Shown piece by piece: positions 43,368 through 59,203 of a stretch of DNA of 64,000 nucleotides. The position numbers were made by a program, and so were the translations under genes. The stretch's first letter is position 1, and each line of letters begins with the position of its first letter. The stretch is from the NCBI GenBank assembly GCA_946965045.2, contig OX337234.1:682001-746000 (forward strand), written 5' to 3'. This DNA is from Epithemia pelagica. Taxonomy: Eukaryota > Protista > Bacillariophyta. The notes below the pieces were generated by a model. That model was given only the letters and a program-made list of their open reading frames with translations. It was not told the DNA's origin and made no database searches.

Positions 43368-46300
43368 ATGGACGCACCCTCGAGCGATACCATCATGGAC
43401 CCAAACCAGGAGGAGACGACCACGACCACGGCGACACATTCTCCCGAAGCAATGGGGCCTTCCGTTGAAGAGCAGCAGCCTCCACTGGAAACAGAAGAAC
43501 CAACCACCCACAACACCCTGGAACACGAGGGTCCGTCGACCGACGCACCTCCACCGACGAGCACACCTCTGGAGGGAATGGCTACAGCGACGACCACAGT
43601 CGAACCGACGACTGCGACGGACCATCCGGACGACGACGACAACGACGGACCTTCACCGATGAGCGACAAAACACCCGTCCACGAAAACGACGACGACAAA
43701 CACAACGACGACAACAACAACGACGAAACCACCCAGGAGGTTCCCCGGATCGAACCAGACGACACGACACCACCTGTGTCCGAGGAGGCTTCAAAGACCA
43801 ATGCAGTGTCGTCAGCACAACCATTGGTGGAGGAAGACCACAACGAAACTCATTCATCCTCTTTGGTCGTCCCAGCCACGACGACCGACCAACAAAACAC
43901 GGAGGAGCACGACGACCATCCTCCGAGTACCGAGTCTCCTACCGACTGGGCCGAGACTGTATCGGTGCCGTTGGTAATGTCCGAAACTGTCGACCAGTCT
44001 CCTCTGCCAACCGCCGACGCACCACCCGAAACGGACGACGACGACGACGACGAATTGATTGTCGGCGCCCCTGCTGCGGCTTCTTCTTCCACTCCATTGT
44101 TGGATGCGGCGGCGGACGACGACGCACTGCCAGCTTCCGCAACCATGGACTTGACCGACGCGAATGCTGGTCCGCCCCTTGAGGAACCACCCGTTGCTCC
44201 TACTAGTACAGGAGGAGTGGGGGAATCCCCTGTGCCACCCACCGAACCATCACCCCAACCCGTAGAGGACGACGCAGCTTCCACAACACTCGTGGAATCG
44301 ACGCTGCAAGAGACTGTGCCGTCCACCGAACCAGTGCCGCAAACCGTCCAAGACACTGCAATACCAGCAGCAGCTTCCACGACACTCGTGTCATTGACGC
44401 CACAAACCGAACAGAATGATGCACTTCCAGCTTTGACCACGACCATGGGAGAGTCGACCGAAGCGAATGCACCGCACACCGAACCGTCGTCGCAAACCGA
44501 CCAGGATGATGCCACGCCAGCTTTGACGACGACAATCGGAGAGTCGATCGAAGCGACTGTGCTGCAAACCAAAGAATTGCGACAACCCGTAGAGGACGAT
44601 GGACTGCCAGCTTCCACAACGACTGGGGAATCGACTGAAGCAAATCTGCCGCCGACCGAACCATTGTCACAAACCGTAGTGAATGACACAATGCCAGATT
44701 CCACAACGACTACTGGGGAATCGACGGAATCAAAGCCACCCACGACGCAGGACGACAGAATACCGGCCTCCACCACGGTCGAATCGACCCCGGTCCAGCC
44801 ACAAATCGAGAAATCTCCTTCCGCCACCGAGGAGGAGGAGGAGGACAACGACACTATGCCTGCGTTATCGACGACGACGACGACGGCACTGGAATCGACC
44901 GAGGCCAATCCACAAATCGAACAATCGCCACAACTATTAGAGGAGAACAACGTCATACCTGCTTCAACGGCTACACTCGAATCGACGGAAACGAATCCGC
45001 AACAAACGGCGGAGGACGACCCAAAGCCTGCTTTGACGACGAGACTGGAATCGACCGAGGCAATTCCGCATAGCGAACAGTCTCCACAAACGACAGAGGA
45101 CGACACAATAACAGCGTTATCGACAACAGGAGAATCGACCGATACGAATATGCAGCAGACCGAGGAACCTCCGTCCACGACGACAGCGGCACTGGAATCG
45201 ACCGAGGCGAATGCGCTAAGCGAACAATCTCCACTGGCACAGGAAAACGACACAATGCCAGCTTTATCGACAACAGGAGAAATGACCGAAGCGAATCCGC
45301 AGCACACCGAGGAACCTCCGTCCACGACAACAGCGGCACTGGAATCGACCGATGCGAATGCGCTAAGCGAACAGTCTCCACTGGCACAGGAGGACGACGC
45401 AATACCAGCTTTATCGTCAACAGAAGAATTGACCGAAGCGAATCCGCAGCACACCGAGGAACCTCCTCCAACCGAAGAGGAGGAGGACGCAGAACCAGCT
45501 TTATCAACGGCGGCGGCACTGGAATCGACCGAGGCGAATGCGCCACGCGAACAATCTCCACTAGCACAGGAAGACGATGCAATACCAGCTTCAATGACAA
45601 CATTGGAGTCGACCGACTTGGACTTGCATGACGAGAAATCTGTACCAACGACGCAAGAGGAGACAACACCTGCCTCGAGCACAATCGAGATGAATGACTC
45701 GGATGCGCACCATGATAAATCTGTGGAACCTGATGAACGGGAAGCATCTGTCGAAACAGGAGCTTTGACTCAAACCCCCAAAGAGGACGATACAACAACA
45801 CCTCCTTCATCGACGACAGTGGAATCTAGCGATTGGAACGGGCCAGTGGCAGAGTCTCCTCCGACGGAACCACTGGAGGCGAGGGTCGAAACAGAGCCTG
45901 TGACAGTCACAGACGAAACAAGGCCTCCGTCGACACCAATGGAATCTGCCGATTCTTCGAATGAGCAAACGAGGCATTCTCCACCACAGAATGACGAAAC
46001 AGCTACACCTCTCTCGACAACAATGGCGCCAACCAACTCGGATGGACAAAGTGGGGCACCGACATCGTTGCAGGAGGAAAATTCACCTTCTTCGACGACC
46101 ATGGAATCTCCCGACTTGGATGCGCCAATACAAGCATCCTTTCTAACGAAGGGTGAATCAACGCCTCCAGAATCCCTGGGTGTTACAGAGCAAGAATCAC
46201 AACGAGCGGAGGACGACGCAACACCTGCTACAATGACACTAGAATCGACCAATGTGAAAGCTCAAAACGAGGAATTACAAAGAACCGAGGACGATGCACC

Positions 46301-49300
46301 GCCTCCGTCGACGACAATAGAATTTTCTGACACAACAACAGAAAGCAAGGAATTGCACAGAATAGGGGACGACGATGCAACTCCTCTCCCGTCCACGACA
46401 ATGGAATCTTCTCACTTGGACACCGAGAACGCGCAACCTCCACCCATTGTGGACGATATAACACCACTAATGACAGCAATAGAATCTACCGACTTGGATG
46501 TGCAAAAGGAGGGATCAAAACGGATAGAGGATCATTCAACACCTCCACCGGGTGCAATGGAATCGTCCAACTTGGATACACAACAGGATGAATCGCAACC
46601 AACAGAGAATGAAACAACACTCCCATTGACAGCAATAGAATCTACCGACTTGGATGTGCAGCAGGAGGAATCCAAACGGATGGAGGATCATTCAACACCT
46701 CCACCGGCTGAAATAAAATCGTCCAACTTGGATACACAACAGGATGAATCGCAACCAACAGAGAACGAAACAACACTCCCATTGACAGCAATAGAATCTA
46801 CCGACTTGGATGTGCAGCAGGAGGAATCCAAACGGATAGAGGATCATTCAACACCTCCACCGGGTGCAACAGAATCGTCCAACTTGGATACACAACAGGA
46901 TGAATCGCAACCAACAGAGAATGAAACAACACTCCCATTGACAGCAATAGAATCTACCGACTTGGATGTGCAGCAGGAGGAATCCAAACGGATGGAGGAT
47001 CATTCAACACCTCCACCGGCTGAAATAAAATCGTCCAACTTGGATACACAACAGGATGAATCGCAACCAACAGAGAACGAAACAACACTCCCATTGACAG
47101 CAATAGAATCTACCGACTTGGATGTGCAGCAGGAGGAATCCAAACGGATGGAGGATCATTCAACACCTCCACCGGGTGCAACAGAATCGTCCAACTTGGA
47201 TACACAACAGGATGAATCGCAACCAACAGAGGACGAAACAACGCCCCCATCGACAGCAATAGAATCTACCGACTTGGATGTGCAGCAGGAGAAATCTAAA
47301 CGGATAGAGGATAATTCAACACCTCCACCGGGTGCAATGGAATCGTCCAACTTGGATACACAACAGGATGAATCGCAACCAACAGAGGACGAAACAACGC
47401 CCCCATCGACAGCAATAGAATCTACCGACTTGGATGTGCAGCAGGAGAAATCTAAACGGATAGAGGATCATTCAACACCTCCACCGGGTGCAATGGAATC
47501 GTCCAACTTGGATACACAACAGGATGAATCGCAACCAACAGAGGACGAAACAACACCCCCATCGACAGCAATAGAACCTCCTGGCTTGGATGTGCAAAAG
47601 GAGAAATCCCCGATTGACGAAAATGATGCGCCACCCATCGCAACCGCATTAAACGAACTAGGATCATCCTCACACCCAACATCAATGGACGAAGCCCAGT
47701 CAAAATCTACCAAAGTAGAAACATTTGACGACGTTTATGGGTTGCCAAAGGATTCTGCCATTGGAGCACCGCTTGTTGAACCACCAGAATCCATGATAGC
47801 TGATCCGACCGTCGACACCGATGGTTCCCCGTCACAAAAGTCCAGCAGCGACTCTGTAGAGCAACTGCCGATCACCGATGAGACATCAGCAGCAATACAA
47901 CCTTCACCGGAGCCACTCACCGATGGCCAATCAAATATGAATGGCTCAACCAATGGACAACATGATGAGGTCAAATCACAGTTGTTGTCTGACGACGGTG
48001 ATACGAAGCACATCCACGAGGCTGTGATGGCAACCTCATCAGTACATACATTAGCAGTTTGTGTGGTCGACACGGCCTTGGAGGATGGAGGGGCCGAAAC
48101 GATACAGACTCAAAACGTCGCAGATGAGAACCAAGTGGATGATTCAGACTTGCCAGTTCACGAGACGGGTCAACCTCTATCATCACAGCAACGGGATTTA
48201 GTAGGAACGAATGAATCGTCACTCAACGTTAACACCCAGAAGGAACCTGCCCTCCTGATGGAACTTTCTAACAATGCTTGCTCGAACGGCAATCCAGCGC
48301 TTAACGTTTCGGAAGACGATGAGACTGCAGCCTCTGCTCAAACAGAACTTGAGGAGAAAACGCAACAGACTCCTCCCCAGTGGGAAGAGACGAGAACGGT
48401 CAATGACGAGTGTTTGCCTGGAAAGAATTCGATAGGTGCCGCTCGTGATGACGAAGATAGACCGCCGGGACAGTCAGAAAAGAATGAGATCTCAAGAACA
48501 ACCGAAGTGAAGCACTCAATTGAGCATTCGCAGAAAGTGGATGCTACGATTTCTTGTAATGGCGATAGTGACCAACAAGCAAAACCACCGTTGGCACCTT
48601 TTAGCGAACCCATTGAAAAAGTTGGTCTTAATGAAACGGAGGAGAAAGAGACAGTGGATAATCACGAGAAGGAGCAACATCTGGGAGAAATCGAGGGCGA
48701 GAAACCTGTTGATGCGCTAGATACGGTAGTGGAACCGACTGAAGAGAGTGGACCAGGACATCACCTTATGGTCCCTTTACCTGAAGTAGATGAGCAGTCA
48801 ACATTACAGCAACAGACCTTGCCAGAAACCTCTCTACAATTAAACGGCAACCAAGAAACTGACATAGGAGGCCGACAAGATATGGATGCTGATGTGACGA
48901 ACCAAGAACTTGGTTTAAATGAGAGGTCGTCAAAGTTACCAAATAATGAAACCGGTTTCACCGAGAAGACTACCGAAGCGACCGAAGAAGTTTCTCCACA
49001 CTCTTCATCCTCCACATTGATCCCAATTTCGCCTCTACCTTCTTCCAATTCGTCTGCCCATCCTAGTGAGGCGCCACTTGAGCAATCGGAGGGGCAGAAA
49101 AGGTCAAAGTCAATCTCCGTGACTCCCATTACTTCTCCTAAGGAGTTTGTACGTAATGAACTGGAATCATCCAAGAAGGTTGATGGATTAACTACCATGT
49201 CCCCCCAATCTACCATCGGTATTTCTCCTCTCCCCTCGTTTGGCCTTTCGCCTCCTCCTACTCTATCTACCGACATCGATCAGGAAGATGAGGAACTGGA

Positions 49301-52300
49301 CGATGACGAGGTTTATGAAGGGTATTTTCAGTACCTTACCGAACGCATTTTGGTGGCCTCACAACCTCCATTGCCACCACCTTCTCCAACACTTCCGATG
49401 CAGCTCCCTTTGGTACAAACGACCACCCCTGTCGCATCCAACGTACGTAGTAAAGAAACCCGGGCCAAACGGAAGGGTGGCATACGATTCTCGTCTCGAC
49501 CCGACTCCTCAGAGAACGATGATGAAGAAGATGATGATGATGACGAGTTTGATTATGATGATGACGAAAATGACATTGATGGAAGTGATTCTGTTGGTAG
49601 TTCGTCGTCCCGAAACCCGGTATCTCTTAATGTCGAAGATACTACCATCCCCACCAACAACTTGAAGGGTTTGTCAAGTTTCATTCCTTCAGGCCGTACA
49701 GCAAATTCTGTTCTTGTCAATTTACCTACTACACCGTATTGGACTCGGGTTTCGAGATTCTTTGACGATCGACAGTTTCTGTGGTTGGCCCTTGATCCAT
49801 TCGTTGAAGAAGGCTCAAACGGGAATGTCATTGATGATGACGACGGAGAAGTGGAGGATATGTCGCACCTGCATTCGCATACGGTGCAGTCAATCTACGC
49901 CGCACTTCATGGCCAAGTTGTAGAACTTCCTTGGGAATCGGCAGGTTGTGGTGGTCTTGTTTCTACCACGCCATCGCTTGGAACGTTGCTCCGTATCTGC
50001 TACACCGTGCATGGTTGGCTGGAACGTACTGGGGAAAAGTCAGTCATTGTACTAGCTTGTCGTAACGGGCAAACTAAAACGGCGCTTGCGGCTGCGGCGT
50101 GCCTTCGATTCCTCGGCAAAGTTCCTTCAGTACAAGCTGGGTTTTCCCAGTTTGTTGCGTGTACTAGACAGAATTCTTTGCACCACGAGGACGAAGTTGC
50201 TCGTGATAAGGTTGCTCCACAAGCTCTCTGGGATGCTCTCCCGCCTTCGATCATTAATGTTCTGCAACACGTGGACGACGTTTTGGAACGGAAACGACGT
50301 GGTAGAGAAATATTTCCTCAGCCGTTGCCGTTGCGACTGAAGGCTATATCATTGCAAGGCGTACCGGTGGACGAAAAACCATGCATTGAAGTATGGAATA
50401 CATCGGGAAATCTGCTTTTTGCCAGTCATCCTCACTTGTATAGCGACACCCACTTCAATTTGCCTAGGTCCACTTCGGAATGGGCTGACGACGAAGGACT
50501 CTACCTGATTCGAGATGACATTAATGACGACGACCATCTCTCCAACCGACAGAGCAAGAGAATGGATGATAGCCATCATCGAGAAGACAACCAAGTGGAG
50601 AGAGATGTGTTATTGCAAGGAGATTTCTGTCTTTTAGGGCGTTTCGGAGGTGCCAATCATGAATACGACGTCCATGATTCGTCGAAGTGGCTTTTTCGGT
50701 ACGTGCAGTCCACTGCGTTCTTGTCTTCGAGCTCAGGTTCTATTGAATTGAACTGCGAGGACGTTGATTTAATGCGTCGCTATGAACAAATGTTTCTTGA
50801 ACGGGGTGACTTCGGATTGACTTTGGTCGTAGAGCCATACTGGAACAGTGGTGTTGTATCGCCCTCTGCTCGTTCTAAGCCCATTCATCGAAGACGCCCG
50901 TCGTCACCCCCTTGTACACCTAGCGCTCTTCCACAGTTGTATGATGGGCCAGACTCATTGGAAGAAGGGTGGCGTTGTATTGCTCAGTATCACATTTGTC
51001 AACCAACAACCACGGATGTTGAAATATGCCGTCAAAAGTACCGGTCTGAATTGCTTCAACTTCAGCGACCGTGTCCGCCTCATATAGTTCGACTTGCCTT
51101 ACAAATGGCGTATGGGAGACACAAACCACGTCAACAAGAAACAGAGCACTTCGCTCAATCTTTGTTGACCCGTGGGTGCTTAAGAAATTTTTGGAAGCCG
51201 CACAAGCAATACCATAAGGCAACCACGAGAAGGCCGAGTATCGTTACATCCTCTCGGCCAAACAATCATCAACCGTCATGGTTGTGGCCAAGTACTCCAC
51301 AAACGGAGAAACCAGAAGATGCCGCCGGTCACGAAGAAGCGGTCAATGAACATTTGCCAGCGAAAAATCTCTCAGCGTCGTTTGAACCTGGTGATGCTGA
51401 TGGTGTTGCTGAAAGGACAAAATCGTCAATGACCAAATCCAAGGAGTCTGATCAACAGAGTGGCTCCGAAAATTCTGTAGCCCGAACGCAAACATCCAAC
51501 GAGGCACCACCCAAGACCGCCACTGAGCGCAAAGGAGGAGAGGTCCAAGACGGAGCACTATCTGGCTCTTTCCTGGACGAAATCGGACATAATGCACCGA
51601 CTACCTCCGATTCGTCGACCCCTGGGAGTGGATTGCTGGCATCCATTGCCGCAAAACGAACATCTGAAGATGTCAATGAGGTATCAAACGACAAAACATC
51701 TGAAGTTGCTCGACAAGCCCCGGTGCACGTTGTCAACGAAACTGGAGACTATGGGCGAACTGGAGTTTTGGCTGCAATTACGGCAAGAGGAACGGCGGAG
51801 GAAGGGACAAACGACGGTGATGGTGGACGTGCGGGGCTTATGGCTGCAATTGCTGCGAAAGGATCGTTGAAACAAACTGATGGAGAACAATCTAGCCTTG
51901 AGGGCGCCACGACGGCCAAACCAAATACTGCCAAACGCGAGAATGATAATTCCAGCGGTGGACGTGCTGGGCTCTTAGCTGCAATTGCCGCTAAAAATGG
52001 CGACGTCAAAGAAGGGGGAGGGAGCGAGGGCGTTGGGCGTGCTGACCTCATGGCCGCAATCTCTGGAATAACCCCGTCGGAACAGAACGATGAAAGTGGG
52101 CGATCTGGTCTAATGGCGGCAATTTCGGCGAAGGGAAAACAGATTAAAGATGATAATGGTACCTCTGATGGTGGACGCGCGGGGCTCATGGCGGCCATTG
52201 CATCGAAAGGAAGCACAGTTGAAAAGAATGACGACGGCAAACAAAGGAGTGACGATGGTCGTGCAGGACTACTGGCGGCCATTTCTAAAAAGGACGACGT

Positions 52301-55300
52301 TGTGACATCGAAGACTGAAGGAAAAGAGTCACAAACTGAACGGCCATCGCCACAGGACTCTGATGCGAGAAAAGGTGACATGGGAGGGAATGCATCGGAG
52401 CTTCTTAACCAACTGAACGAGCTTGGTATCACTCTTGATGATCTGACTCGTCTTGAACAGGTTTCTCAGCTGATAGAGGAGAAGAAGGGCTCGAAGTCGA
52501 AGTCCAGTGACGATGCAAACTCTCCATCCCCTCCGATGAAAAATGACTCTCGATTTGGCAAATATTGGAAAATGAAGAATGTTGGCATTCCAGAAGGTGC
52601 AATCCGAAATGCGCTAAAGAAGGATGGGTGGGATGAGACAATCTGGGATAATCTTGATTGGAACAAGAACTATGATCAACAGCAAAAGCCAAGCACGCAG
52701 TCACCCGAGGAAGAAAAGAAGGAAGACCCTAACGATAGCGGAGGATGTGACAAACCAACCATGAAGAACGATAGTCGGTTTGGAAAGTATTACAAAATGA
52801 AGTCTGTTGGTCTTCCTGAAGGCGCCATTCGCAATGCCATGACTCGAGACGGTGTAGACCCATCTGTACTTGATCTTGATTGGGAGAAGAACTATGAAGA
52901 CCAGATATCCAAGCCTGCAGGTGATTCCAAGGATGGTCCTTCCATGAAAGATGACGAACGATTCTCAAAGTATTGGAAAATGAAATCTGTAGGTTTGCCG
53001 GATGGTGCCATAATGAACGCAATGACTAGGGACGGTGTTGACCCGAAGGCTCTGGAATTAGACTGGGACAAGAATTACGAGACACAAACACAAGCCACTA
53101 GTGGGGGTGGCTCTGAGAAAACTGGTCCGCCAATGAAAGAAGACGAACGATTTGCAAAATACTGGAAGATGAAATCTGTGGGCTTGCCCGACGGTGCCAT
53201 TATGAATGCGATGACTCGTGATGGAGTTGATCCCAAAGCACTTGATATATGGGATAAAAACTATGAAGACCAAACAAAACCCGCTGGTGGTGATAATGCT
53301 TCGCCCCCCTCAGGACCTCCGATGAAGGAGGATGAAAGATTTGCAAAATATTGGAAGATGAAATCAGTAGGATTACCGGATGGTGCAATCATGAACGCCA
53401 TGGCCCGTGATGGAGTTGACGCAAAAGCGTTAGACCTCGACTGGGATAAAAATTATGAGGACCAAACAAAACCTGCTGGCAATGATGGTACTTCAGCTCC
53501 CTCAGGACCGCCGATGAAAGAAGATGAGCGATTTGCAAAGTATTGGAAGATGAAATCGGTAGGATTGCCAGATGGTGCAATCATGAACGCAATGTCAAGA
53601 GATGGAGTTGACCCGAAAGCTCTTGATCTGGACTGGGACAAAAATTATGAAGCGCAAACACAGCCTTCCGGAACCAGTACAGTGGATACAGTGGACAGCG
53701 GACCACCGTTGAAAGATGATCCGGAGTACTCCAAATATTTCAAAATGCTCTCTGTTGGTCTGCCCCCTCCAGCAGTACAGAATGCAATGTCTCGCGACGG
53801 GAAAGACCCTAAAATCCTTGATCTTGATCCCAACAAGAGTGTGGCCTCACAGTTGAAAACAGATACTGCCAAGCGAGCCCCAGCCAAGAAAAAGAAGAAA
53901 GTAAGACGCAAGAAAATCTACTGGACACCTATTGATCCTGGTCAAATTAAAGAGGATTCCTTATGGTCTATTGTCAAGGGGAAGTTATCGATGACTCAAC
54001 TCAATTACGATGTGAAAGAGTTTGAAGATTTGTTCACAGAATCGACTGATCCTGCCGACAAAAAACAGAAGAAGCCCAAAAAATCGGGTGGTGAAAAGAA
54101 AGAGAAAAAATCGGTTCAAGTCATTGATGGAAAGCGTTCGATGAATGGAGGAATTATTCTCCTTAGGCTGCGGATGGCGTACAATACAATTGCTAGCATG
54201 ATTGACAAGATGTACGAACCAGGAATGTTCTTTGAGGATTTGGTTTATCAGATTTGTCTCACACGTTAGTTGTCCGCATGTTTTGATTGCAACAGGGAAA
54301 TCGGAAGCTTTGACTCTACACAGCTCAAGGCTCTCAAAGAATATTTACCAACTTCAGAAGAACGGAGAGGGTTGGAGATGTACATGAGCAAGGCCGGGGA
54401 CTCAGAGGAAAAGCGACAGTTCTTTTACGCAGACTTGAGTGACTGCGAAAAATACATGTACACTATTATGACCGTTGACAAAGCCGATAAGAAGTTTGAT
54501 TGTATGATATTCCGCTCTCAATTCCAGAGCCGATACGATGAGTTGCTTGAGGCCATCAAGTTAATTGAACAAGCATGCGATGAGGTCAGAACATCTGACA
54601 AGCTTCGAAAAATCATTGGTCTCATTTTGGTACTAGTGAATGAAATCAATACCGGCGGTGAATCGAAAGGGGCTGCAGAGGGGTTCAGTCTGGAGGCCCT
54701 TCTTAAATTGAATGAGGTGAGTCGGTTGGTGTTCATGTTGTGATATGGTAACTCTGGTTTTCTAATCACGGACGTCGATTCTAGGCAAAAGCGTTTGACA
54801 AAAAGACCAGTGTTCTCCAGTATTTGGTTAAATTGGTAATGAAGAACGATGAAGAGCTCCTCAAATTCGGAAAAGACCTAGCGCATGCGAAAAAAGCCGA
54901 CAACACAATTCTTGACAGTTTGGTATCCGATATGAAAAGTCTTAACCAGGATCTCGAGTCTGTAACTGGGATAGCTCGAGAGGATGCCGAAAGTGCAGAG
55001 CAAGAAGGTCGTCGAACGTTCTCCCTGGAAGACCTTAAAGGACAGAAAACGAGTGTGCATGTATCAACAGCGGGGGTACCACAATTCAACCAAATCACAC
55101 ACCATACTGGCCGAACACCAATGGAACGTTTTACGCTCAGTGCTGCAGCCTCGATCAAGAGCGCAATAGAATTGGCTGACAAGATACAGAAGAAGTTTAT
55201 TGACTTGCTTCGATATTTCGGGGAAGACGAGAAAATGGCAAGTGACGACTTCTTCCGGACAATGAATAGATTTGTTGCAGAGTTCGAAAACGCCAAAGTC

Positions 55301-58300
55301 CATGTTGAAAAGGCGGAAAAAGCCCGACTCAAAGCCGAGAAGAAGGAAGCCGAGAGGAAAAAGAAAGAAGAAAAGGCCAAAGCGAAGGCCGCCAAAGAGA
55401 AACCTGCTGAATCAGAGAGAACAAGTAAAACAGAATCAGAAAGCTTGATCAAAGCGCAAACCATATCGCAAAGTGAGAGCATAGAAACGGACGGTTCGGA
55501 AACCAAAAATGCCAAATCTGCACTCATGGCAGCGATTTCATCGACACCCAAGATGCAATCAGAGGCTACAAACAACGGAAGAGCTGGATTACTGGCAGCT
55601 ATAGCATCTCAAGGGCAACCAAAAGATGCAGAACCCTCTGATGGGGGAAAGACCAGATTGATGGCTGCGATTGCTGTGAAAGGGTCCCGAAACGACAATG
55701 ACTCTCCTGACAATGGCGGACGAGCTGGATTGATGGCCGCCATTGCTTCCAAAGCGCCAGAGGCTAAGGGTTCCTCCAGTGGGGCCAAAGGTAGAGCTGG
55801 ATTGATGGCCGCCATTGCTGCGAAAGGGTCCCAAAACGACAATGACTCTACTGGGAATGGCGGACGAGCTGGATTGATGGCCGCCATTGCTGCCAAAGCG
55901 CCAAAGGCTGAGGGTTCCTCCAGTGGGGACAATGGTCGAGCTGGATTGATGGCCGCTATTGCCGGCAAAACGCCGAAGAATGACAGTGTATCAGATGCTG
56001 ACAATGGTCGAGCAGGATTGATGGCTGCAATTGCCGCCAAAGCGCCAAAGGATGAGAGTGCGGACAACGGAAGGGCTGGGTTGATGGCCGCCATTGCCGC
56101 CAAGGCGCCGAAGAATGACGGTGTGTCAAATGCTGACAATGGTCGAGCAGGATTGATGGCTGCAATTGCCGCCAAAGCGCCAAAGGATGAGAGTGCGGAC
56201 AACGGAAGGGCTGGATTGATGGCCGCCATTGCCGCCCAGGCGCCGAAGAATGACATTGTATCAGATGCTGACAATGGTCGAGCAGGATTGATGGCTGCAA
56301 TTGCCGCCAAAGCGCCAAGGGATAAGAGTACGGACAACGGAAGGGCTGGGTTGATGGCCGCCATTGCCGCCAAGGCGCCGAAGAATGACGGTGTGTCAGA
56401 TGCTGACAATGGTCGAGCAGGATTGATGGCTGCAATTGCCGCCAAAGCGCCAAAGGATGAGAGTGCGGACAACGGAAGGGCTGGATTGATGGCCGCCATT
56501 GCCGCCAAGGCGCCGAAGAATGACAGTGTATCAGATGCTGACAATGGTCGAGCAGGATTAATGGCTGCAATTGCCGCCAAAGCACCAAGGGATGAGAGTG
56601 CGGACAACGGAAGGGCTGGGTTGATGGCCGCCATTGCCGGCAAAACGCCGAAGAATGACAGTGTATCAGATGCTGACAATGGTCGAGCAGGATTGATGGC
56701 TGCAATTGCCGCCAAAGCGCCAAAGGATGAGAGTGCGGACAACGGAAGGGCTGGGTTGATGGCCGCCATTGCCGCCCAGGCGCCGAAGAATGACACTGTA
56801 TCAGATGCTGACAATGGTCGAGCAGGATTGATGGCTGCAATTGCCGCTAAAGCGCCTAAGCATGAGAGTGCGGACAACGGAAGGGCTGAGTTGATGGCCG
56901 CCATTGCCGCCAAGGCGCCGAAGAATGACAATGTGTCAGATGCTGACAATGGTCGAGCAGGATTAATGGCTGCAATTGCCGCCAAAGCGCCAAGGGATGA
57001 GAGTGCGGACAACGGAAGGGCTGGGTTGATGGCCGCTATTGCCGGCAAAACGCCGAAGAATGACAGTGTTTCAGATGCTGACAATGGTCGAGCAGGATTG
57101 ATGGCTGCAATTGCCGCCAAAGCGCCAAAGGATGAGAGTGCGGACAACGGAAGGGCTGGGTTGATGGCCGCTATTGCCGGCAAAACGCCGAAGAATGACA
57201 GTGTATCAGATGCTGACAATGGTCGAGCAGGATTGATTGCTGCAATTGCCGCCAAAGCGCCAAGGGATGAGAGTGCGGACAACGGAAGGGCTGGGTTGAT
57301 GGCCGCCATTGCCGCCAAGGCGCCGAAGAATGACAATGTGTCAGATGCTGACAATGGTCGAGCAGGATTGATGGCTGCAATTGCCGCCAAAGCGCCAAAG
57401 GATGAGAGTGCGGACAACGGAAGGGCTGGATTGATGGCCGTCATTGCCACCCAGGCGCCGAAGAATGACAGTGTATCAGATGCTGACAATGGTCGAGCAG
57501 GATTGATGGCTGCAATTGCCGCTAAAGCGCCAAAGGATGAGAGTGCGGACAACGGAAGGGCTGGGTTGATGGCCGCCATTGCCGCCCAGGCGCCGAAGAA
57601 TGACACTGTATCAGATGCTGACAATGGTCGAGCAGGATTGATGGCTGCAATTGCCGCCAAAGCGCCAAAGCAGGAGAGTGCGGACAACGGAAGGGCTGAG
57701 TTGATGGCCGCCATTGCCGCCAAGGCGCCGAAGAATGACAATGTGTCAGATGCTGACAATGGTCGAGCAGGATTAATGGCTGCAATTGCCGCCAAAGCGC
57801 CAAGGGATGAGAGTGCGGACAACGGAAGGGCTGGGTTGATGGCCGCTATTGCCGGCAAAACGCCGAAGAATGACAGTGTTTCAGATGCTGACAATGGTCG
57901 AGCAGGATTGATGGCTGCAATTGCCGCCAAAGCGCCAAAGGATGAGAGTGCGGACAACGGAAGGGCTGGGTTGATGGCCGCTATTGCCGGCAAAACGCCG
58001 AAGAATGACAGTGTATCAGATGCTGACAATGGTCGAGCAGGATTGATTGCTGCAATTGCCGCCAAAGCGCCAAGGGATGAGAGTGCGGACAACGGAAGGG
58101 CTGGGTTGATGGCCGCCATTGCCGCCAAGGCGCCGAAGAATGACGGTGTGTCAGATGCTGACAATGGTCGAGCAGGATTGATGGCTGCAATTGCCGCCAA
58201 AGCGCCAAAGGATGAGAGTGCGGACAACGGAAGGGCTGGATTGATGGCCGTCATTGCCACCCAGGCGCCGAAGAATGACAGTGTATCAGATGCTGATAAT

Positions 58301-59203
58301 GGTCGAGCAGGATTGATGGCTGCAATTGCCGCTAAAGCGCCTAAGCATGAGAGTGCTGACAACGGAACGGCTGGGTTGATGGCCGCCATTGCCGCCAAGG
58401 CGCCGAAGAATGACAATGTGTCAGATGCTGACAATGGTCGAGCAGGATTAATGGCTGCAATTGCCGCCAAAGCGCCAAAGCAGGAGAGTGCGGACAATGG
58501 TCGAGCTGGATTAATGGCCGCCATTTCCGCCAAGGCGCCGAAGAATGACAGTGTATCAGATGCTGACAATGGTCGAGCAGGATTGATGGCTGCAATTGCC
58601 GCCAAAGCGCCAAAGGAGGAGAGTGCGGACAACGGAAGGGCTGGGTTGATGGCCGCCATTGCCGCCAAGGCGCCGAAGAATGACAGTGTGTCAGATTCTG
58701 ACAATGGTCGAGCAGGATTGATGGCTGCAATTGCCGCCAAAGAGGATGAGTCCAGTGTGGAAAATGGCAGAGCGGGGCTGATGGCTGCAATTGCTGCCAA
58801 AGGGCAAGCCGATGAAAATAGCGGATCTGGATTGATCGCTGACGTTGGACAACGAGTTTCTGGAACGGATAGCCTAGTGGATGCGAATACTTTCAGCACT
58901 GGAGATGTCACGACTGCAGATTGTGGTTCATCAGGAGATTTCGACGGCTTTCGATCCGAGGCGACATCGTCGGAATCTCAGGGGAAAACGGCAGTGAGTG
59001 TCGTGGATGATGAGGTGGACACCGGTGTTTGGGAACGTGATACTGGGGGACGTTTGCGTCGGGTACAAGAGGGCGAGGATGAATCAGCACAAGAGGACTC
59101 TGCTTCGATAACGGCACAGGGCGACGAAGGGCCAGTAGTAGGGGATCGTTCAGGATTACTGGCTGCTATCGAATCGCTACAATCCCGCTTCACACCAGAA
59201 TAG
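43368..59203 (+). CDS. Giant formin (about 5227 aa): acidic repeat N-terminus, PTEN-like/C2 module, WH2-helix-like motifs, 7 CCDC53-like repeats, FH2, about 50 C-terminal RAGLMAAIAAK repeats; exons 43368-54211, 54296-54716, 54785-59203
   Basis: FH2 motifs RRKKIYWTPID, VIDGKRSMNGGIIL, LKEYLPTSEE, GFSLEALLKLNE, KKTSVLQYLV. Two GT-AG introns (54212-54295, 54717-54784) join the three large ORFs in frame. Confidence 0.9.
46472..47600 (+). repeat. Coding tandem repeat, 156-nt (52-aa) unit, about 7 copies
   Basis: TAIESTDLDVQQEESKR.EDHSTPPP...SSNLDTQQDESQPTE.ETT recurs with a 156-nt period. Confidence 0.92.
52531..53830 (+). repeat. Seven coding repeats resembling the WASH subunit CCDC53 C-terminal domain
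   Basis: Consensus PPMK.D.RF.KYWKMKSVGLP.GAI.NAM.RDGVDP..LDLDW.KNY. Confidence 0.8.
55570..58810 (+). repeat. Coding tandem array of DNGRAGLMAAIAAK units (alternating 24/21 aa; 135-nt dimer; 810-nt higher-order unit)
   Basis: About 48 copies counted in the translation; tgacactgta landmarks at 56791 and 57601 are exactly 810 nt apart. Confidence 0.95.

Follow-up and report, generated by a model that had tools for sequence, protein, structure and literature searches.

Why does a diatom formin carry about 48 copies of one short helix after its FH2 domain? The question is raised by a gene in a stretch of 64,000 nucleotides from Epithemia pelagica (contig OX337234.1, positions 682,001 to 746,000 of the forward strand), which we refer to as the window and within which all coordinates are given. 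The C-terminal tail of the formin predicted from this gene contains a tandem array of Ala-rich amphipathic helix units that is certainly large, is transcribed in frame with FH2, and is the largest of its kind found in this analysis. Based on the sequences of the array and its relatives, we suggest that it is an amplified formin tail motif in a family of FH1-less formins and, tentatively and with slightly less than even confidence, that the tail is a greatly expanded WH2/DAD-type formin tail that would act as a multivalent low-affinity actin binder, the actin contact being the inferred part. The tail comprises the following parts:

55295..55513, plus strand: charged segment rich in Lys and Glu that links FH2 to the array, with a pI of 9.5 (translation, charge calculation).
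55514..58843, plus strand: array of ~48 tandem helix units with the core GRAGLMAAIAAK and the linkers APKNDSVSDADN or APKDESADN (regular expression and hidden Markov model (HMM)).
55922..58742, plus strand: regular part of the array, 20.9 double units of 135 nt (45 residues) (TRF score 4921, 93% matches).
58844..59203, plus strand: acidic C-terminal segment with one further motif copy, DRSGLLAAIESLQ (59144-59200), followed by TAG (translation, RNA contig).

In the spliced protein, the regular expression G[RT]A[GE]L[MI]A[AV]I counts 47 post-FH2 units (residues 4075-5138) and a profile HMM counts 48; the unit spacing strictly alternates between 24 and 21 residues, with 24 long and 20 short regular units in addition to flanking variants. 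The unit consensus is G-R-A-G-L-M-A-A-I-A-A-K-A-P-K, followed by NDSVSDADN or DESADN, and degenerate copies are present at 55514 (KSALMAAISS) and at the extreme C-terminus (DRSGLLAAIESLQ). The array therefore stands as the original prediction had described it from the sequence, i.e. ~48 units with 24/21-residue spacing encoded in the same exon as the C-terminus of FH2, on the evidence of TRF, the regular expression, the HMM, and the extent of exon 3. The entire tail after FH2 measures 1,302 residues. The array has a net charge of 0 (137 Lys and Arg, 137 Asp and Glu; pI 7.1), and its composition is of low complexity with 28% Ala. An AlphaFold2 (AF2) model of three double units has one helix of 15-16 residues per unit with 4-5 or 9 non-helical residues in between, and its low confidence (pLDDT 57) is what one would expect of isolated helices along a disordered polypeptide. 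The linkers are short, acidic, and probably disordered. A feature search of the ESM Atlas with a 270-residue piece of the array gave no usable match.

The 12-codon core of the unit is under strong purifying selection. Across the 44 regular units, the core codons have a pS of 0.47 and a pN of 0.036 (pN/pS 0.077), compared with ~0.6 for the linkers; the invariant G, R, L, M, and I are among the selected core residues, and the linkers drift. Because the 24- and 21-residue unit types encode an identical core peptide with differing codons at most positions, it is the peptide that is conserved and not the DNA repeat.

The array lies at the end of a three-exon gene:

43368..54211, plus strand: exon 1 of the formin gene, starting at the first in-frame ATG (open reading frame list).
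54212..54295, plus strand: intron 1, 84 nt, GT..AG, spliced out in RNA-derived contig 17 of run X4.
54717..54784, plus strand: intron 2, 68 nt, GT..AG, spliced out in RNA-derived contig 17 of run X4 (sequence read).
54785-59203, plus strand: exon 3 of the formin gene, with the end of FH2 and the array.

The reading frame is open from 43203, has its first ATG at 43368, and ends at the TAG at 59201-59203. The formin predicted from the first ATG has ~5,230 residues, and the spliced model over the whole open frame has 5,282 codons with a single stop, the terminal one. Exon 1 encodes hyper-acidic N-terminal repeats, a weak PTEN/auxilin-like segment, a pre-FH2 motif cluster, CCDC53-like repeats, and the start of FH2. 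We tested this gene model against public sequencing runs of the same organism using contigs assembled from short reads. Introns 1 and 2 are kept in runs X1 and X2, which behave as DNA, and are precisely what a 2,719-nt contig of run X4 omits; this contig runs unbroken from FH2 into the array up to 55741, overlapping X4 contigs extend to 56000, and an X4 contig at 58721-59376 continues from the end of the array through the stop codon into at least 173 nt of 3' untranslated region. Inside the array, the 31-mer depth in X4 is 0.67-0.87 of the assembled copy number; as the DNA runs have a similar value (0.6-0.75), there is no sign that splicing removes the array. The concern raised with the original prediction, that the transcript might end or be spliced before the array, is thus answered by contigs that enter the array, cover its end, and have a DNA-like depth in between. 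We note that the assembly base differs at full depth in all three covering runs at 54367, 54377, 55924, and 58889-58890; because these differences are fixed, we take the public runs to come from another strain or haplotype.

Upstream of the tail, the core of the protein is organized as follows:

51624..52334, plus strand: pre-FH2 cluster of 8 WH2-like motifs, GR[AST]GL[LM]AAI[AS]xKG.. (regular expression, HMM).
52524..53882, plus strand: seven repeats similar to the CCDC53 C-terminus, ~60 residues each (Pfam PF10152, E 3.5e-70, 7 stretches).
53910..55294, plus strand: FH2 domain, interrupted by the two introns (Pfam PF02181 on three exon products).

The protein is a formin because its FH2 domain (PF02181) exceeds the curated threshold: each of the three exon products covers part of the profile (positions 4-108, 111-236, and 250-371; 45.5, 99.6, and 32.4 bits, respectively), the last part falling at the start of exon 3, and the FH2 domain of the Epithemia clementina ortholog scores 213 bits in one piece. 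It is not a canonical FH1-FH2 formin with a poly-Pro FH1 directly N-terminal to FH2, as the longest Pro run in the whole protein is PPP and no Pro-rich 30-residue segment lies within 3,000 residues of FH2. The FH1 position is occupied by the CCDC53-like repeats, the last of which ends ~10 residues before FH2. An AF2 model of the repeat based on a multiple sequence alignment has a pLDDT of 90 and four short helices, for which no convincing PDB fold was found (Foldseek E >3; VIA Z ≤3.4). All diatom orthologs found have 4-9 such repeats before FH2, and together with the best reciprocal similarity to named diatom proteins this places the protein in a diatom orthogroup of CCDC53-repeat formins.

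Are the units WH2 domains? By definition, a WH2 domain combines an LLxxL/I helix with an LKKV box that follows 5-6 residues later and in which an invariant Leu precedes two basic residues (PMC12871907). The helix is present, with R-x-x-L-[LM]-x-x-I invariant or nearly so in the units; hhalign pairs GRAGLMAAIAA in register with GRNALLSDISK of WIP, and likewise with the DdVASP peptide, over 11 columns (pre-FH2 units, P 3.5e-4, probability 37%; array units, P 1e-3, 21%). Pfam WH2 (PF02205) is the top match of the pre-FH2 cluster with 20.4 bits (E 4e-4), below the gathering cut-off of 23.1 bits; two of 19 single pre-FH2 units match (best E 0.024), and the LKKV box is partly present in some copies, which keep a hydrophobic residue and a Lys at I+6/+7 (LKQT, IKDD, VKEG). 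In the array, as the original prediction had noted, the LKKV part is reduced: A-P-K-[ND]-[DE] stands at that place, and the E. clementina units have G-K-S-S-E there. The array reaches 8.7 bits against Pfam WH2 (E 2) in a 90-residue stretch that matches profile positions 2-12 only, and none of 26 single array units matches; the extreme C-terminal copy has a weak WH2 helix match (residues 181-191 of the tested fragment). PDB profile searches with the unit alignments A1 and A2 returned no WH2 chain (one chance match and none, respectively), and published WH2 peptides scored no higher than shuffles against the HMM of the pre-FH2 units. The units do not qualify as DAD either: the LLxxL helix is there, but the array is net neutral, and Pfam finds no DID/GBD partner in the N-terminal half. 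Because the second half of WH2 is missing, the Pfam scores are below threshold, and the PDB and shuffle tests are negative, we classify the units as putative WH2/DAD-type helices (the LLxxI 'H region' only) and not as WH2 domains. The description of the array as WH2-helix-like thus holds for the helix and not for membership in WH2.

To place the array among its relatives, we used a word-based search with the pre-FH2/FH2 part of the formin. It returned the protein of the same species together with orthologs from E. clementina, Seminavis, Nitzschia, Thalassiosira, and others, all with CCDC53-like repeats and FH2. The E. clementina ortholog (ACA910_016565; P0002) has 5,786 residues, is 62% identical upstream of the array, and carries 14 pre-FH2 and 48 post-FH2 units with the core GR[AS]GLMAAIA[AS]K. 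Because its linker, KGKSSEEKAGD, is unrelated and its period is 22 residues, the arrays of the two species were expanded or homogenised separately, yet they are equal in length. In Thalassiosira, DPRAALMSMLSKRAPP units number 4-5 ahead of FH2 and 1-3 behind it. The tail of the Seminavis robusta 'Formin-like protein' (P0003:1900-2390) has at least 18 tandem Ala-rich GGLAAMAAMSAKKK units, and two Bacillariaceae tails (P0010:1676-1875 and P0011:1929-2105) have 6-7 GGIAALAAQAALKK[S/T/A] units each, with a WH2-style LKK box at the spacing of the VASP GAB. Both our unit profile and Pfam WH2 missed the Seminavis and Bacillariaceae tail units. Moreover, hhalign aligned the Bacillariaceae LKK-type units to WH2 peptides over just 'LKK' (P 0.15) and to the window units with P 0.049; therefore, they are tied to the window units by their position in orthologous tails and not by statistics. 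Reading the Nitzschia tails, we found two units in Nitzschia inconspicua and none in Nitzschia sp. Nitz4.

A motif-only search, in which a profile of the 30-residue unit was compared with 1.84 billion representatives at E ≤1e-3, gave 26 proteins with 2-15 units each. Several of these have FH2 next to the motif. P0016 has ten motifs, six CCDC53-like repeats, FH2, and five motifs in this order, with an FH2 71% identical to that of the window; P0017 has the end of an FH2 (61% identical) followed by 11 motifs; and P0023 (four CCDC53-like repeats, FH2, six motifs) and P0026 (FH2, six motifs) have FH2 domains only ~25-35% identical to that of the window. Pfam WH2 is the top match of the P0026 tail (E 0.008), below the cut-off. 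P0016 is the closest metagenomic relative, and FH2 identity to it is 71% for the window, 71% for E. clementina, 58% for Seminavis, and ~45% for Thalassiosira. Because variant tail arrays are found at the same position in orthologs and relatives, FH2 followed by tandem Ala-rich helix units is a family trait of which the window and E. clementina proteins are the extreme. A search for FH2 plus this array in other diatoms, which had been proposed as a check, thus succeeded fully in E. clementina, in variant form in Seminavis and the Bacillariaceae, and hardly or not at all in Nitzschia (0-2 units). The candidate new actin system proposed for this locus does not hold as a one-off, the layout being shared with E. 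clementina (48 units), close relatives (5-11), and distant formins (6). The suggested link to diatom gliding is weak, as units are scarce or absent in other raphid diatoms. In our literature search, no paper printed these motif strings or described diatom formin tails.

What, then, might the array do? The reading that we tentatively prefer is the following. The array forms the C-terminal tail of a diatom formin without FH1. Its ~48 copies of an Ala-rich amphipathic helix of 12-16 residues (G-R-A-G-L-M-A-A-I-A-A-K) represent an extreme expansion of the motif found on either side of the CCDC53-like/FH2 core in this family. Each helix would bind weakly to the hydrophobic cleft of actin, so that an FH2 dimer would present ~100 low-affinity sites. 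These sites may enrich actin monomers locally and/or keep hold of the side of the elongating filament. In a formin unable to use FH1-profilin delivery, this would promote nucleation, help to supply monomers, and provide a tether. Four points argue for actin contact: the units are constantly placed by FH2 (down to 25% FH2 identity), their helix is WH2/GAB-like, FH1 is absent, and formin tails have known roles. FH2 and the array also share one exon and one transcript, and the reading is further favoured by the selection on the core peptide, by the same core and unit number in E. clementina, and by the units or variant units that follow FH2 in relatives and orthologs. Formin tails enhance nucleation and processivity and range in length 'from absent to >200 residues' (PMC10797183). 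The unit core resembles the G-actin-binding peptide of VASP, GLAAAIAGAKLRKVSK, which binds with a Kd of 10.3 µM (PMC3034019).

Several observations weigh against this reading. The array lacks the LKKV box, scores far below the Pfam WH2 cut-off as a whole and not at all unit by unit, and finds no WH2 chain in the PDB, and the pre-FH2 profile does not favour WH2 peptides over shuffles. Experimentally, the isolated H region of INF2 and an mDia1 DAD without the Leu of LKKV did not pull down actin (PMC12871907). Because the array is exactly neutral, the electrostatic side-binding model of formin tails is inapplicable. Finally, the Nitzschia orthologs have two units or none, and the unit motif also ends proteins that lack FH2.

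A bolder version of the actin-binding reading, which we consider doubtful, is that the family has replaced FH1-profilin delivery with CCDC53-like repeats at the FH1 position and flanking arrays of helix-only WH2 derivatives, reaching ~48 tail sites per chain in Rhopalodiaceae. If so, one dimer would recruit actin monomers by the tens or extend along its own filament for 130-260 nm, making the protein a one-chain nucleator, feeder, and tether without counterpart among studied formins; and, with 48 units independently maintained in two species whose linkers differ, copy number itself would be under selection.

Because the motif and the CCDC53-like repeats co-occur, the main rival is that the helices are ligands of the CCDC53-like domains, much as DAD is of DID. 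A cis interaction would make the formin inhibit itself or fold back, and in trans 48 motifs against seven domains per chain would create a multivalent network or condensate that clusters formins. Of the 11 motif-only matches of at least 800 residues, six have 5-7 CCDC53-like domains, and three of these six (P0018, P0020, and P0029) are without FH2. The same combination is found in P0013, P0014, and P0015: all six FH2-less proteins, from metagenomes or MMETSP and ~1,900-2,200 residues long, have 5-8 central CCDC53-like repeats and end in 3-8 tandem GGGRGGLL(D/A)AI(A/K)GRG units, i.e. the same helix in RGG-type linkers. Moreover, the window formin, E. clementina, and P0016 have motifs on either side of the domain block, and the domain, which is modelled with confidence as a small helical fold and has no solved homolog, may bind peptides. 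However, diatom orthologs keep 4-8 domains with few or no motifs (none in Nitz4, two in N. inconspicua), four long motif-array proteins (P0025, P0030, P0031, and P0038) have no CCDC53-like domain, and the numbers of motifs and domains are not stoichiometrically related. We regard this explanation as unlikely, although it is the strongest of the alternatives.

Somewhat less likely again is a tail without a specific ligand in the actin system, which could be a flexible Ala-rich spacer, an entropic bristle, a self-associating region, or a binding site for an unrelated partner such as a membrane, a myosin, or an EF-hand protein. The low complexity and neutral charge of the array, its isolated low-confidence helices in AF2, the absence of significant matches in domain libraries or the ESM Atlas, and a copy number that varies from 0 to 48 among relatives would all fit such a tail. 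A spacer, however, would not need the strong position-specific selection on 12 residues, including the invariant G, R, L, M, and I, nor the same core kept in E. clementina and the metagenomic relatives despite different linkers; and for membrane binding, the hydrophobic moment of the unit helix is modest and there is no basic face.

The last alternative concerns the number of units and not their function. The copy number of 48 is the assembled count, and short-read contigs collapse inside the array, where the following block stands out:

56858..57335, plus strand: 478-bp block recurring exactly 810 bp downstream at 57668-58145 (sliding identity, unit mismatch matrix).

In the unit matrix, double units 7-9 equal double units 13-15, and this exact duplicate could be a recent higher-order (810-bp) duplication or an assembly expansion. 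That the assembled array is substantially inflated, with the real gene having clearly fewer units (e.g. ~30) or alleles of unequal length, is the least probable of the alternatives: the duplicate, a repeat 31-mer depth in two DNA runs of just 0.6-0.75 of the assembled copy number, and the origin of these runs from another strain or haplotype speak for it, but the same depth reaches up to 7.9x single copy and is a lower bound because allelic single-nucleotide polymorphisms split k-mer depth, the units differ by 1-17 of 135 nt and are thus placeable by long accurate reads, E. clementina independently has 48 units, and the conclusion would be the same even at 30 units. The assembly expansion that the original prediction named as a danger is countered in part by a depth several-fold above single copy, while the depth deficit and the exact duplicate leave room for some of it.

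Outside the core and tail, the N-terminal ~2,400 residues of the formin (43368-50400) are hyper-acidic (net charge -370, pI 4.05) and rich in Thr, Glu, Ser, and Pro, and they contain runs of near-identical ~52-residue units (..ESSNLDTQQDESQPTE..TAIESTDLDVQQE..). Pfam found no Drf_GBD/FH3, GBD, DID, or other domain in residues 1-2842. The segment at 49830-50110 (around 50055) contains VLACRNGQTKT, an eroded C-x5-R-like loop, and has a weak match to the PTEN-like phosphatase domain of auxilin (3n0a, E 0.025). PTEN-like domains have been reported in stramenopile formins (PMC2386819), with which this match is consistent; nevertheless, we did not retain a PTEN-like reading made by eye of the N-terminal half, as it has only this weak match and lacks Pfam support. 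We also rejected as a gene an antisense open reading frame of 1,100 residues (55609-58911, minus strand); it is a mirror artefact of the repeat, open only for lack of stop codons in that frame.

The gene and its relatives constitute a natural series of FH1-less formins with 0 to 48 tandem post-FH2 units, with and without an LKK box. This series bears on how a formin may be fed without profilin, on whether helix-only WH2 derivatives could act multivalently, and on the role of the conserved C-terminal domain of the WASH subunit CCDC53; it is also relevant to how diatoms, whose actin regulators have been little studied, build actin structures. Formin tail and WH2-like motifs are known as tuners of nucleation and processivity, always as single short elements. 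The array resembles the DAD or WH2/DAD tails of INF2, DAAM, FMNL3, and mDia1 in having a short amphipathic LLxxL/I helix after FH2 (PMC12871907, PMC10797183). In those formins, the motif is present in one copy in a tail of at most ~200 residues, whereas here there are ~48 copies in a tail of 1,302 residues, the motif is also found upstream of FH2, the basic/LKKV 'B region' is absent from the array, and no DID/GBD partner was detected.

Spire (four WH2), Cobl (three WH2), and Ciboulot (three beta-thymosin) likewise have tandem short helices of the type that binds the actin cleft, separated by short linkers. Hydra thypedin, with 27 beta-thymosin-like domains not fused to FH2 (PMC3614969), shows that arrays of this motif class can be very large and is the largest WH2-class array that we cite for comparison. 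The units of all four proteins are complete modules with LKKT/V and without fusion to FH2, whereas the units described here are helix-only and have 21-24 residues; Spire works with formins in trans, whereas this array is fused to FH2. Nebulin is a very long one-chain array of short actin-binding repeats (35 residues, SDxxYK) that is not attached to a nucleator, and it offers only a functional analogy without sequence relation, in that a long repeat array could lie along the filament. The G-actin-binding site of Ena/VASP (hGAB, GLAAAIAGAKLRKVSK) is similarly Ala-rich, with G-L-x-A-A-I-A compared with G-L-M-A-A-I-A-A here. The VASP GAB delivers monomers to the barbed end without profilin, and the elongation rate follows the saturation of low-affinity sites (PMC3034019). 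Unlike the array, however, hGAB keeps LRKV, and VASP, which lacks FH2, carries a single GAB on each chain of its tetramer. Among the closest counterparts are the orthologous diatom formins, which share the order of CCDC53-like repeats, FH2, a Lys/Glu-rich segment, and tandem Ala-rich helix units, and in which the sequence and number of the units are specific to each lineage (Seminavis, Bacillariaceae, Thalassiosira, and Nitzschia).

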